From Bugula neritina (lineage: Eukaryota > Animalia > Bryozoa): 64,000 nt of DNA. Position 1 is the stretch's first letter. Every line of letters begins with the position of its first letter. The position numbers and the translations under genes were made by a program. The notes below the pieces were generated by a model. The model saw only the letters and a list, made by a program, of their open reading frames with translations, did not search any database and was not told where the DNA came from. The stretch spans positions 2,695,751-2,759,750 of the forward strand of contig OZ037773.1 of NCBI GenBank assembly GCA_964035545.1, given 5' to 3'. Positions 42,953 through 43,685 of this stretch are shown piece by piece.

Positions 42953-43685
42953 TCTCAATCTGTGGACAGCAGCTGTTTCGGGATTTGTCCCCTCATCAGC
43001 ACAGAAAGAGTACCATGGCCCACACCTTCGCAATAGTAAAACTTATAGTTTTACTAAAGCATATTTAAAAGGTGTGTAAACTCAAGCCAGAGTGCTCAAG
43101 TGACTCTAGGGGTCACCTAGGAGTCACGAGCATTGCAAAATGCTAGCAGCTTGAGTTTGTGACCATGGTGAGAGTGCTCAATCATTTAATGTCATTGCTG
43201 AGCAATAAATGAGAGCGTAATATCTCAATCTGTGGACAGCAGCTGTTTCGGGATTTGTCCCCTCATCAGCACAGAAAGAGTACCATGGCCCACACCTTCG
43301 CAATAGTAAAACTTATAGTTTTACTAAAGCATATTTAAAAGGTGTGTAAACTCAAGCCAGAGTGCTCAAGTGACTCTAGGGGTCACCTAGGAGTCACGAG
43401 CATTGCAAAATGCTAGCAGCTTGAGTTTGTGACCATGGTGAGAGTGCTCAATCATTTAATGTCATTGCTGAGCAATAAATGAGAGCGTAATATCTCAATC
43501 TGTGGACAGCAGCTGTTTCGGGATTTGTCCCCTCATCAGCACAGAACAGAGTACCATGGCCCACACCTTCGCAATAGTAAAACTTATAGTTTTACTAAAG
43601 CATATTTAAAAGGTGTGTAAACTCAAGCCAGAGTGCTCAAGTGACTCTAGGGGTCACCTAGGAGTCACGAGCATTGCAAAATGCT
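42953..43685 (-). mobile_element. Retrozyme tandem array (2.7 x 270 bp), subfamily 1, with three intact hammerheads (42959-43005, 43229-43275, 43499-43545)
   Basis: Exact 270-bp period (tctcaatc at 42953, 43223, 43493); no credible ORF; (TA)n on both sides. Confidence 0.9.

Follow-up and report, generated by a model that had tools for sequence, protein, structure and literature searches.

The stretch of Bugula neritina DNA analyzed here (64,000 nt, in the following the window) contains at 42951-43686 a tandem array of a short repeat, which is read in RNA sense on the minus strand and is enclosed by two (TA)n tracts. Tandem Repeats Finder assigned a period of 270, 2.7 copies and 99% matches to positions 42950-43686, and a BLAST search of the window with one unit recovered two units in full length (100% identity) and a partial one of 182 bp. 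In RNA sense the array is composed of a 5'-truncated unit starting at unit position 90, two full units of 270 nt and a tail of 14 nt (CACAGAUUGAGAUA). The (TA)n tract at 42829-42950 adjoins the 3' end of the array and is regarded as the probable target and priming site; the tract at 43687-43798 adjoins the 5' end. The GC content of the unit is 43%, and no reading frame exceeds 44 codons even if the unit is read as a circle. A non-coding unit of 270 bp in 2.7 tandem copies, as described by an earlier reading of the sequence alone (the sequence-only reading), was hence borne out by both programs and by the length of the longest frame.

Each unit carries a complete hammerhead ribozyme motif of type I, which appears three times on the minus strand as UCUGUG CUGAUGA GGGGACAAAUCCC GAAA CAGCUGCUG UC|CACAGA. 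Hammerhead 1 was located at 43499-43545 by descriptor scan and from the sequence itself, hammerheads 2 and 3 at 43229-43275 and 42959-43005 by descriptor scan, with predicted cuts at 43505|43504, 43235|43234 and 42965|42964, respectively. These are exactly the positions (42964/5, 43234/5 and 43504/5) at which the sequence-only reading had expected one cut per unit. Helix I consists of six base pairs, an internal loop and an extension of three base pairs and is open-ended, helix II has four base pairs, and helix III has four base pairs with a loop of 3 nt. For hammerhead 3 the 3' strand of helix I and the GAG extension are contributed by the 14-nt tail. The full core CUGAUGA ... GAAA ... GUC| is present in all three units of the array and in a solo copy of the unit elsewhere in the window, in agreement with the conserved type I pattern of CUGANGA, GAAA, A15.1-U16.1 and cleavage after H17 (not G). 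With a strict type I descriptor, which demanded the full core and at least five, four and three base pairs in helices I, II and III, four sites were detected in the window versus none in 200 composition-preserving shuffles. Within a context of 64 nt the active hammerhead fold has an energy of -15.3 kcal/mol, compared with -18.2 kcal/mol for the minimum free energy structure, and the hammerhead fold should therefore be accessible.

Curated models did not recognise the motif at threshold. None of the hammerhead families of Rfam reached its gathering score, and none was found at E<=10 when 1.6 kb were searched. For a slice of 86 nt the sole Rfam match was RAGATH-1-hammerhead with 15.2 bits (E=1.4; gathering score 56.3), and the Infernal alignment to this model includes the catalytic core CUGAUGAG / CGAAAC / GUC. 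Sequence changes between two subfamilies of the unit comprised one compensatory pair and five one-sided changes within the fold; a single compensatory pair was considered too thin and covariation was dropped as support.

Cleavage at cuts 1 and 2 is predicted to release a monomer of 270 nt (43235-43504, minus strand) and cleavage at cuts 2 and 3 a second one (42965-43234, minus strand) that is 100% identical to the first. The linear fold of the second monomer has an energy of -104.9 kcal/mol (z = -9.2). As a circle it is predicted to fold with -98.2 kcal/mol and 68% of its bases paired; helices I and II of the hammerhead form and the motif is not sequestered by any complementary strand, with an alternative GCUG:CAGC pairing in place of helix III. 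Both self-cleavage and circularisation of the unit are predictions at this stage.

All five further monomers that had been reported for the window were recovered by BLAST, one with 98% and four with 91% identity. The former is the solo copy at 19753-20034 (BLAST 19767-20034, minus strand), which belongs to the subfamily of the array, shares its orientation, lies between two (TA)n tracts and ends in the 14-nt tail known from the array; its hammerhead (19807-19761) is intact. The four 91% monomers represent a second subfamily (subfamily B) and run on the plus strand, opposite to the array: 42551-42830 (BLAST 42551-42816), 39963-40241 (BLAST 39963-40227), 37379-37658 (BLAST 37379-37643) and 34787-35064 (BLAST 34787-35050), the latter three within a 2.58-kb repeat. 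All four show a change of G12 to A (GAAA to AAAA) and a deletion of 2 nt in helix III and failed the descriptor, so that they cannot be active ribozymes; the monomer at 37379-37658 carries in addition a change of GUC to GUU. Copies of subfamily B with an intact core occur elsewhere in the genome, at loci L007 and L039. The 2.58-kb tandem repeat extends over 34180-42830 (3.3 periods with spacings of 2580-2592). Each period contains a (TA)n tract, a plus-strand monomer of subfamily B, a further (TA)n tract, a short stub in inverted orientation from the 3' UTR of a Penelope-like element (PLE), designated PLE-A, and a 5'-truncated copy of PLE-A. A mirror-image copy was found at 32410-34600.

The PLE-A copy closest to the array (40660-42499, plus strand) is truncated at its 5' end at amino acid 230, has a frameshift near amino acid 504 and terminates with a 3' UTR ending in (TA)n. 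Sister copies are situated at 38080-39919 and 35493-37333 on the plus strand and at about 32410-34177 on the minus strand. PLE-A has a length of approximately 2.4 kb and a single ORF, as read from a frame of 699 amino acids and its flanks. The ORF shows the motif RWK, DKT in place of DKG, a CxCX5C linker (CNCRNSTVC), and an endonuclease region with CxxC and CxH around a conserved E and N and without an internal CCHH; the 3' UTR contains a canonical hammerhead and insertion took place in (TA)n. The Hydra clade has been defined by a length below 3 kb, a single ORF, a C-terminal GIY-YIG domain without internal CCHH, the motifs RWK, DKT and CxCX5C, CxxC/CxH around E and N, a hammerhead and (TA)n as target (PMC8557442). 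PLE-A matches this published definition and may be assigned to the Hydra clade, by motif reading rather than by phylogeny. Searches of PLE-A against Pfam detected neither the reverse transcriptase nor the endonuclease.

PLE-A possesses a type I hammerhead of its own, ACAC CUGACGA ... GAAA CUAUAUAG UC|GUGU, which was located at 34427-34471 on the plus strand and by descriptor scan at four further sites on the minus strand (32472-32516, 35197-35241, 37784-37828 and 40364-40408). Its sequence is unrelated to that of the hammerhead in the array. In the long PLE-A copies (37159-37203, 39745-39789 and 42325-42369, plus strand) the cleavage triplet GUC of this hammerhead is changed to GCC; GUC is kept in the short inverted stubs and in the copy at 34427-34471. 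The suggestion that the array sits beside candidate autonomous partners stood only insofar as PLEs do adjoin it; the copies in the window are 5'-truncated and frameshifted, comprise only amino acids 230-699 and carry a different hammerhead.

Further PLE sequences of the window belong to a third family. At 30800-32410 a head-to-head pair of 5'-truncated copies was found, in which ORFs at 31167-31736 (minus strand) and 31627-32034 (plus strand) matched the Pfam domain GIY-YIG with E-values of 3e-5 and 7e-5. These copies carry a minimal hammerhead, CUGAAGA ... GAAA UAUC|AGUG (32291-32330, plus strand, and 30912-30873, minus strand), and terminate in AAGAUA(TA)n. Two other features of the window were recorded in passing: an Rfam tRNA match at 16847-16917 (plus strand) with 29.7 bits at a gathering score of 29, for which ARAGORN reported no tRNA in the window, and an ORF of 134 amino acids at 52144-52548 (plus strand), whose weak Pfam match to ETX_MTX2, a pore-forming fold of the aerolysin type, stays below threshold (E 0.006; 16.8 bits versus a cut-off of 22).

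Across the genome 403 candidate matches to a PLE reverse transcriptase were obtained, many with open frames of 700-740 amino acids. Uninterrupted frames exist in several families, which are mutually 40-55% identical, and two PLE-A copies, whose frames comprise 620 and 699 codons when counted from the first ATG, share 98.4% identity. A protein search with positions 814-2910 of locus L038 yielded 2510 homologues of about 700 amino acids. Those that bear a name come from a bryozoan, Watersipora subatra (53%, the closest), and from a clam, Solemya velum (49%). PMC8557442 does not count bryozoans among the phyla in which the Hydra clade occurs, and the host may extend the range of this clade. Comparison of L036 with L038 revealed two alternative 3' ends of PLE-A 85 nt apart. 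In both of them ACAUUAUA leads into (TA)n, an arrangement suggestive of priming through microhomology at AU repeats.

Since pseudo-LTRs (pLTRs) of PLEs carry type I hammerheads and form tandems, the unit of the array might merely be the pLTR or the 3' region of an autonomous PLE and the array a solo-pLTR remnant. Retrozymes of Xenopus are homologous to pLTRs (preprint 10.64898/2026.07.22.740005), and a 91% copy of the unit lies between PLE-A copies in the window. The sequence-only reading had itself named this explanation as one that would speak against its proposal. For its examination 23 independent insertion loci of the unit were compared, each oriented in RNA sense. In 19 of them a tblastn search with the 699-aa PLE protein detected no PLE coding sequence within 1.5 kb, and at the four loci with a PLE nearby a (TA)n tract always intervenes and the PLE families differ. 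Where a PLE adjoins the unit, the 3' end of the PLE is complete in itself and its hammerhead is another one. Furthermore, a sensitive BLAST search of the unit against 11 PLE-containing loci revealed no similarity to PLE 3' UTRs; the matches were separate insertions of the unit only. A heptamer, AGAUUGA, common to the unit and the tail of PLE-A was judged too short to count. Finally, 407 3' ends of the unit abutting (TA)n face 92 such ends of PLE-A, which shows 5' truncation likewise. We consider a pLTR origin of the array very improbable.

A search of the 216-Mb assembly, in which the window occupies C9:2695751-2759750, with the unit returned 678 candidate copies, and those which were scored are 97-100% identical. 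This is in line with the expectation of an apparently recent family, which had been founded on the small divergence of the dispersed copy in the window (98% identity), and at this level of identity the family is probably young. The 3' end of an insertion, defined as GUC-CACAGAUUGAGAUA followed by TATATA, occurs 407 times genome-wide (control 0), internal unit-to-unit junctions occur 65 times, and exact copies of the 47-nt ribozyme 179 times. The 3' junctions and the exact ribozymes are spread over all large contigs. With 407 ends versus 65 internal junctions the family consists mostly of solo or truncated copies, and arrays with at least two cut sites, which would be able to release unit-length RNA, are a minority.

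Comparison of the 23 loci disclosed a uniform anatomy of the insertions. A (TA)n tract is found at the 3' end of every locus and at the 5' end of 18. The 3' end is common to all 23 and lies 14 nt past the cleavage site, directly abutting (TA)n; six loci show single-base variants in the tail, the position of the 3' end being otherwise unchanged. The 5' ends, on the other hand, are scattered over many unit positions. Lengths range from approximately 1.0 to 3.97 units, and short stubs with the common 3' end have 34 nt (L029:3079-3113, 0.13 unit) and 140 nt (L043). Many 5' junctions begin with TA-like bases, which suggests microhomology. Hammerhead cleavage was tested as the maker of the 5' ends and rejected, because a start at precisely +1 is not seen in any of the 23 insertions and three of them reach 5-12 nt beyond the cut on its upstream side. 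Insertions that share a fixed 3' end, are truncated to graded degrees at the 5' end and lie in a specific target bear the classic footprint of target-primed reverse transcription.

Locus L043 (G000:C3:12317300-12320300, minus strand) offers a condensed view of this anatomy, as a single (TA)n tract holds a stack of three insertions in the same orientation: a PLE from a second family of the Hydra clade (52% to PLE-A), a stub of 41 nt from the 3' end of PLE-A, and the 140-nt stub of the unit. Each of the three ends in its own fixed 3' sequence. PLE-A and the unit are neighbors of the same orientation in the window, at L043 and at C7:9.23 Mb. No claim of co-insertion is made, as among the first 100 of the 407 retrozyme ends just one has a PLE-A end at a distance of 1 kb or less, about as many as common targeting of (TA)n would yield.

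A minisatellite of the ordinary kind that spread through unequal crossing-over or segmental duplication, with a hammerhead that is a relic without current role, would be hard to reconcile with these data. The exact 3' end recurs at hundreds of dispersed loci, with 5' truncations graded down to 34 nt, the ribozyme persists in its 179 exact copies, and the unit reaches a high word depth in RNA libraries (see below). In favour of a minisatellite, the 2.58-kb segmental tandem repeat copied one monomer four times in the window, and in-situ homogenisation is needed for some of the patterns within arrays. As an account of the family as a whole we regard a minisatellite as highly improbable.

The sequencing runs available for comparison, 23 in all, are assembled contigs. 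The unit is fully covered, in every bin, by contigs of four RNA-labelled runs from four studies, one of which is on record as RNA. A joint that goes back by 270 across GUC|CAC was present in three of these runs, one of them a bona fide oligo-dT RNA-seq run, with the reservation that in contigs a circle looks the same as a multimer or as carried-over DNA. The summed word depth of the unit amounts to about 61,000 in the run with the highest value. The presence of junction-containing sequence in RNA libraries is accordingly documented in part, strand and ends being properties which are not read from contigs.

Taken together, the array probably goes back to a single insertion of a non-autonomous retroelement, young and of high copy number, that belongs with the metazoan non-LTR retrozymes and would have the life cycle outlined below. 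The sequence-only reading had arrived at such a retrozyme, and this assignment is supported by tandem units with type I hammerheads, the lack of coding capacity, the stable fold, dispersed young copies and the presence of PLEs in the genome. In the proposed cycle the minus strand of the array would be transcribed, the three hammerheads would cut the transcript after GUC, and a host RNA ligase would close the monomers into highly self-paired circles. A TA microsatellite would be opened by a (TA)n-nicking GIY-YIG endonuclease/reverse transcriptase of a PLE, for which Hydra-clade PLEs, abundant here and with uninterrupted frames, would be the leading candidate source. The freed TA 3' end could then pair with AUAU at unit positions 11-14, and reverse transcription would proceed from there backwards over the intact cleavage junction to a variable extent, often for more than one round of the unit. 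Such a reaction would leave arrays like the 2.7-mer of the window, in which the 3' end is constant and the 5' end varies from copy to copy. Cleavage, circularisation, the acting enzyme and the template, be it circle or multimer, are what we infer from the sequence and the insertion pattern.

With respect to the enzyme, the unusual (TA)n target is common to the unit and the Hydra-clade PLEs of the same genome, and these PLEs are therefore the leading candidate mobilisers; a specific partner is only putative. Naiad PLEs have also been reported as preferring (TA)n (PMC8557442).

As to the template, every copy extends 14 nt beyond the cut and internal junctions are intact, so a self-cleaved linear monomer can be dismissed. 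The template is, as judged from the copies, either a re-ligated circle or an uncleaved multimer, with an intact cleavage junction in both cases. The choice of the 3' end is strikingly narrow: although the unit holds three AT-repeat 4-mer sites, one is used almost exclusively. Genome-wide no copy ends at GUC followed by AT-only sequence, none ends at the second AUAU of the unit and a single copy ends at its UAUA site. This near-absolute use of one of three sites argues for more than microhomology, and the fixed 3' end could originate either from specific recognition beside the ribozyme or from an inherited (UA)n tail.

The latter would apply if new copies arose from linear, uncleaved or read-through multimeric transcripts which carry the 14-nt tail and the (UA)n of the microsatellite, so that the 3' end is inherited and circles, if made, are a dead end. 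The counts of 407 versus 0, 0 and 1 exceed what microhomology predicts given two other AT-repeat 4-mers, and PLE-A, which is a linear RNA, shows a like pattern of a fixed 3' end and (TA)n. Variants called against a majority-rule reference of the non-coding unit (271 nt) are informative on both sides. In the window array, L019 and L027 they are present in only some of the adjacent units, which requires a heterogeneous linear template, as a heterogeneous master array would provide, or later homogenisation within the array. In L011, L020 and L029, by contrast, private variants are common to all units, as would be produced by one monomer copied round and round, and variants common to all units are the usual case. 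A linear multimer would further have to escape cutting by its terminal hammerhead, which is complete including the helix I extension, and multimeric masters are few, as seen from 65 unit-unit junctions versus 407 insertions. We rate inheritance of the 3' end from linear multimers as possible, though less probable than copying from a circle.

A circle is favoured over a linear multimer as template, since uncleaved tails should be rare where the terminal ribozyme is complete including its tail-borne helix I extension, and since circles are the abundant form in other retrozymes (PMC7229834). It is tempting to go one step further and to read the invariant 3' end together with lengths of up to four units as the footprint of target-primed rolling-circle reverse transcription, in which a re-ligated circular RNA is copied by the (TA)n-specific enzyme of a Hydra-clade PLE that recognises a site beside the ribozyme. 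We put this forward as a tentative proposal. If true, it would be the first case in which target specificity names the mobilising clade of an animal retrozyme, with the circle shown as template.

Dependence on PLEs is the leading hypothesis for the known animal retrozymes, for which a mechanistic fingerprint has so far been missing. Copying of a target-primed circular RNA into tandem cDNA by a PLE enzyme was already proposed by Cervera and de la Peña in the discussion of their work on metazoan non-LTR retrozymes (2020, PMC7229834), a review of the same year stated that metazoan retrozymes show no motif pointing to a mobiliser (PMC7761336), and a preprint of 2026 linked vertebrate retrozymes to the pLTRs of PLEs by homology (10.64898/2026.07.22.740005). 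The family from B. neritina supplies such a fingerprint in two respects: an absolute (TA)n target, common to Hydra-clade PLEs of the same genome, and one sole position for priming, shortly after the ribozyme cut, with a template that has kept or regained the cleavage junction. As a young family of about 400 copies in a genome of 216 Mb it represents a compact system for the questions of circle versus multimer and of the mobiliser. A literature search joining hammerhead ribozymes with bryozoa found only work on twister ribozymes.

On every sequence-level criterion the element fits the metazoan non-LTR retrozymes (PMC7229834; reviewed in PMC7761336). Like these it has short tandem units (150-450 bp are known) with a type I hammerhead in each, a GC content below 45-50%, no coding capacity and neither LTR, PBS nor PPT, the ends of the array being (TA)n. 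The predicted circle is likewise self-paired with helices I and II formed and the motif unsequestered, the sequence occurs in contigs of RNA-labelled libraries, and PLEs are co-resident. Unlike the known retrozymes, the Bugula family is mostly solo or 5'-truncated, as seen from the surplus of ends over junctions (407 versus 65), instead of forming long arrays, and (TA)n is its exclusive target, the 3' end being fixed at a single position 14 nt downstream of the cut. Here the target site points to a candidate mobiliser; cleavage and circles of the Bugula family are predicted.

With Hydra-clade PLEs (Craig et al., 2021, PMC8557442) the family has in common the insertion into (TA)n, a hammerhead of type I close to the 3' end, and copies that are fixed at the 3' side and severely truncated at the 5' side; both occupy the same microsatellites. 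The PLEs of about 2.4 kb encode a reverse transcriptase and a GIY-YIG endonuclease, whereas the retrozyme encodes nothing, and neither its hammerhead nor the rest of its sequence is related to the PLE families sampled. Type I topology and association with PLEs are also features of the hammerheads in PLE pLTRs (Cervera and de la Peña, 2014; Lünse et al., 2017). According to the account of these given in PMC7761336, they are minimal variants, nearly devoid of helix III, and are assumed to work as dimers, whereas the hammerhead of the retrozyme has a helix III of four base pairs. With a 6-bp helix I with internal loop and extension and a 4-bp helix II it matches the "canonical" retrozyme type. 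As in SINE/LINE partnerships, a non-autonomous RNA would borrow the reverse transcriptase of another element, and unlike many SINE/LINE pairs no 3' tail common to the retrozyme and its candidate partner was found. Plant LTR retrozymes (PMC4918200) also pass through circles made by hammerheads and differ in their LTR, PBS, PPT and type III hammerhead, all of which are absent here. Among these systems the array of B. neritina represents a known kind of element, and what is new is its unusually clean signature of target and priming site.
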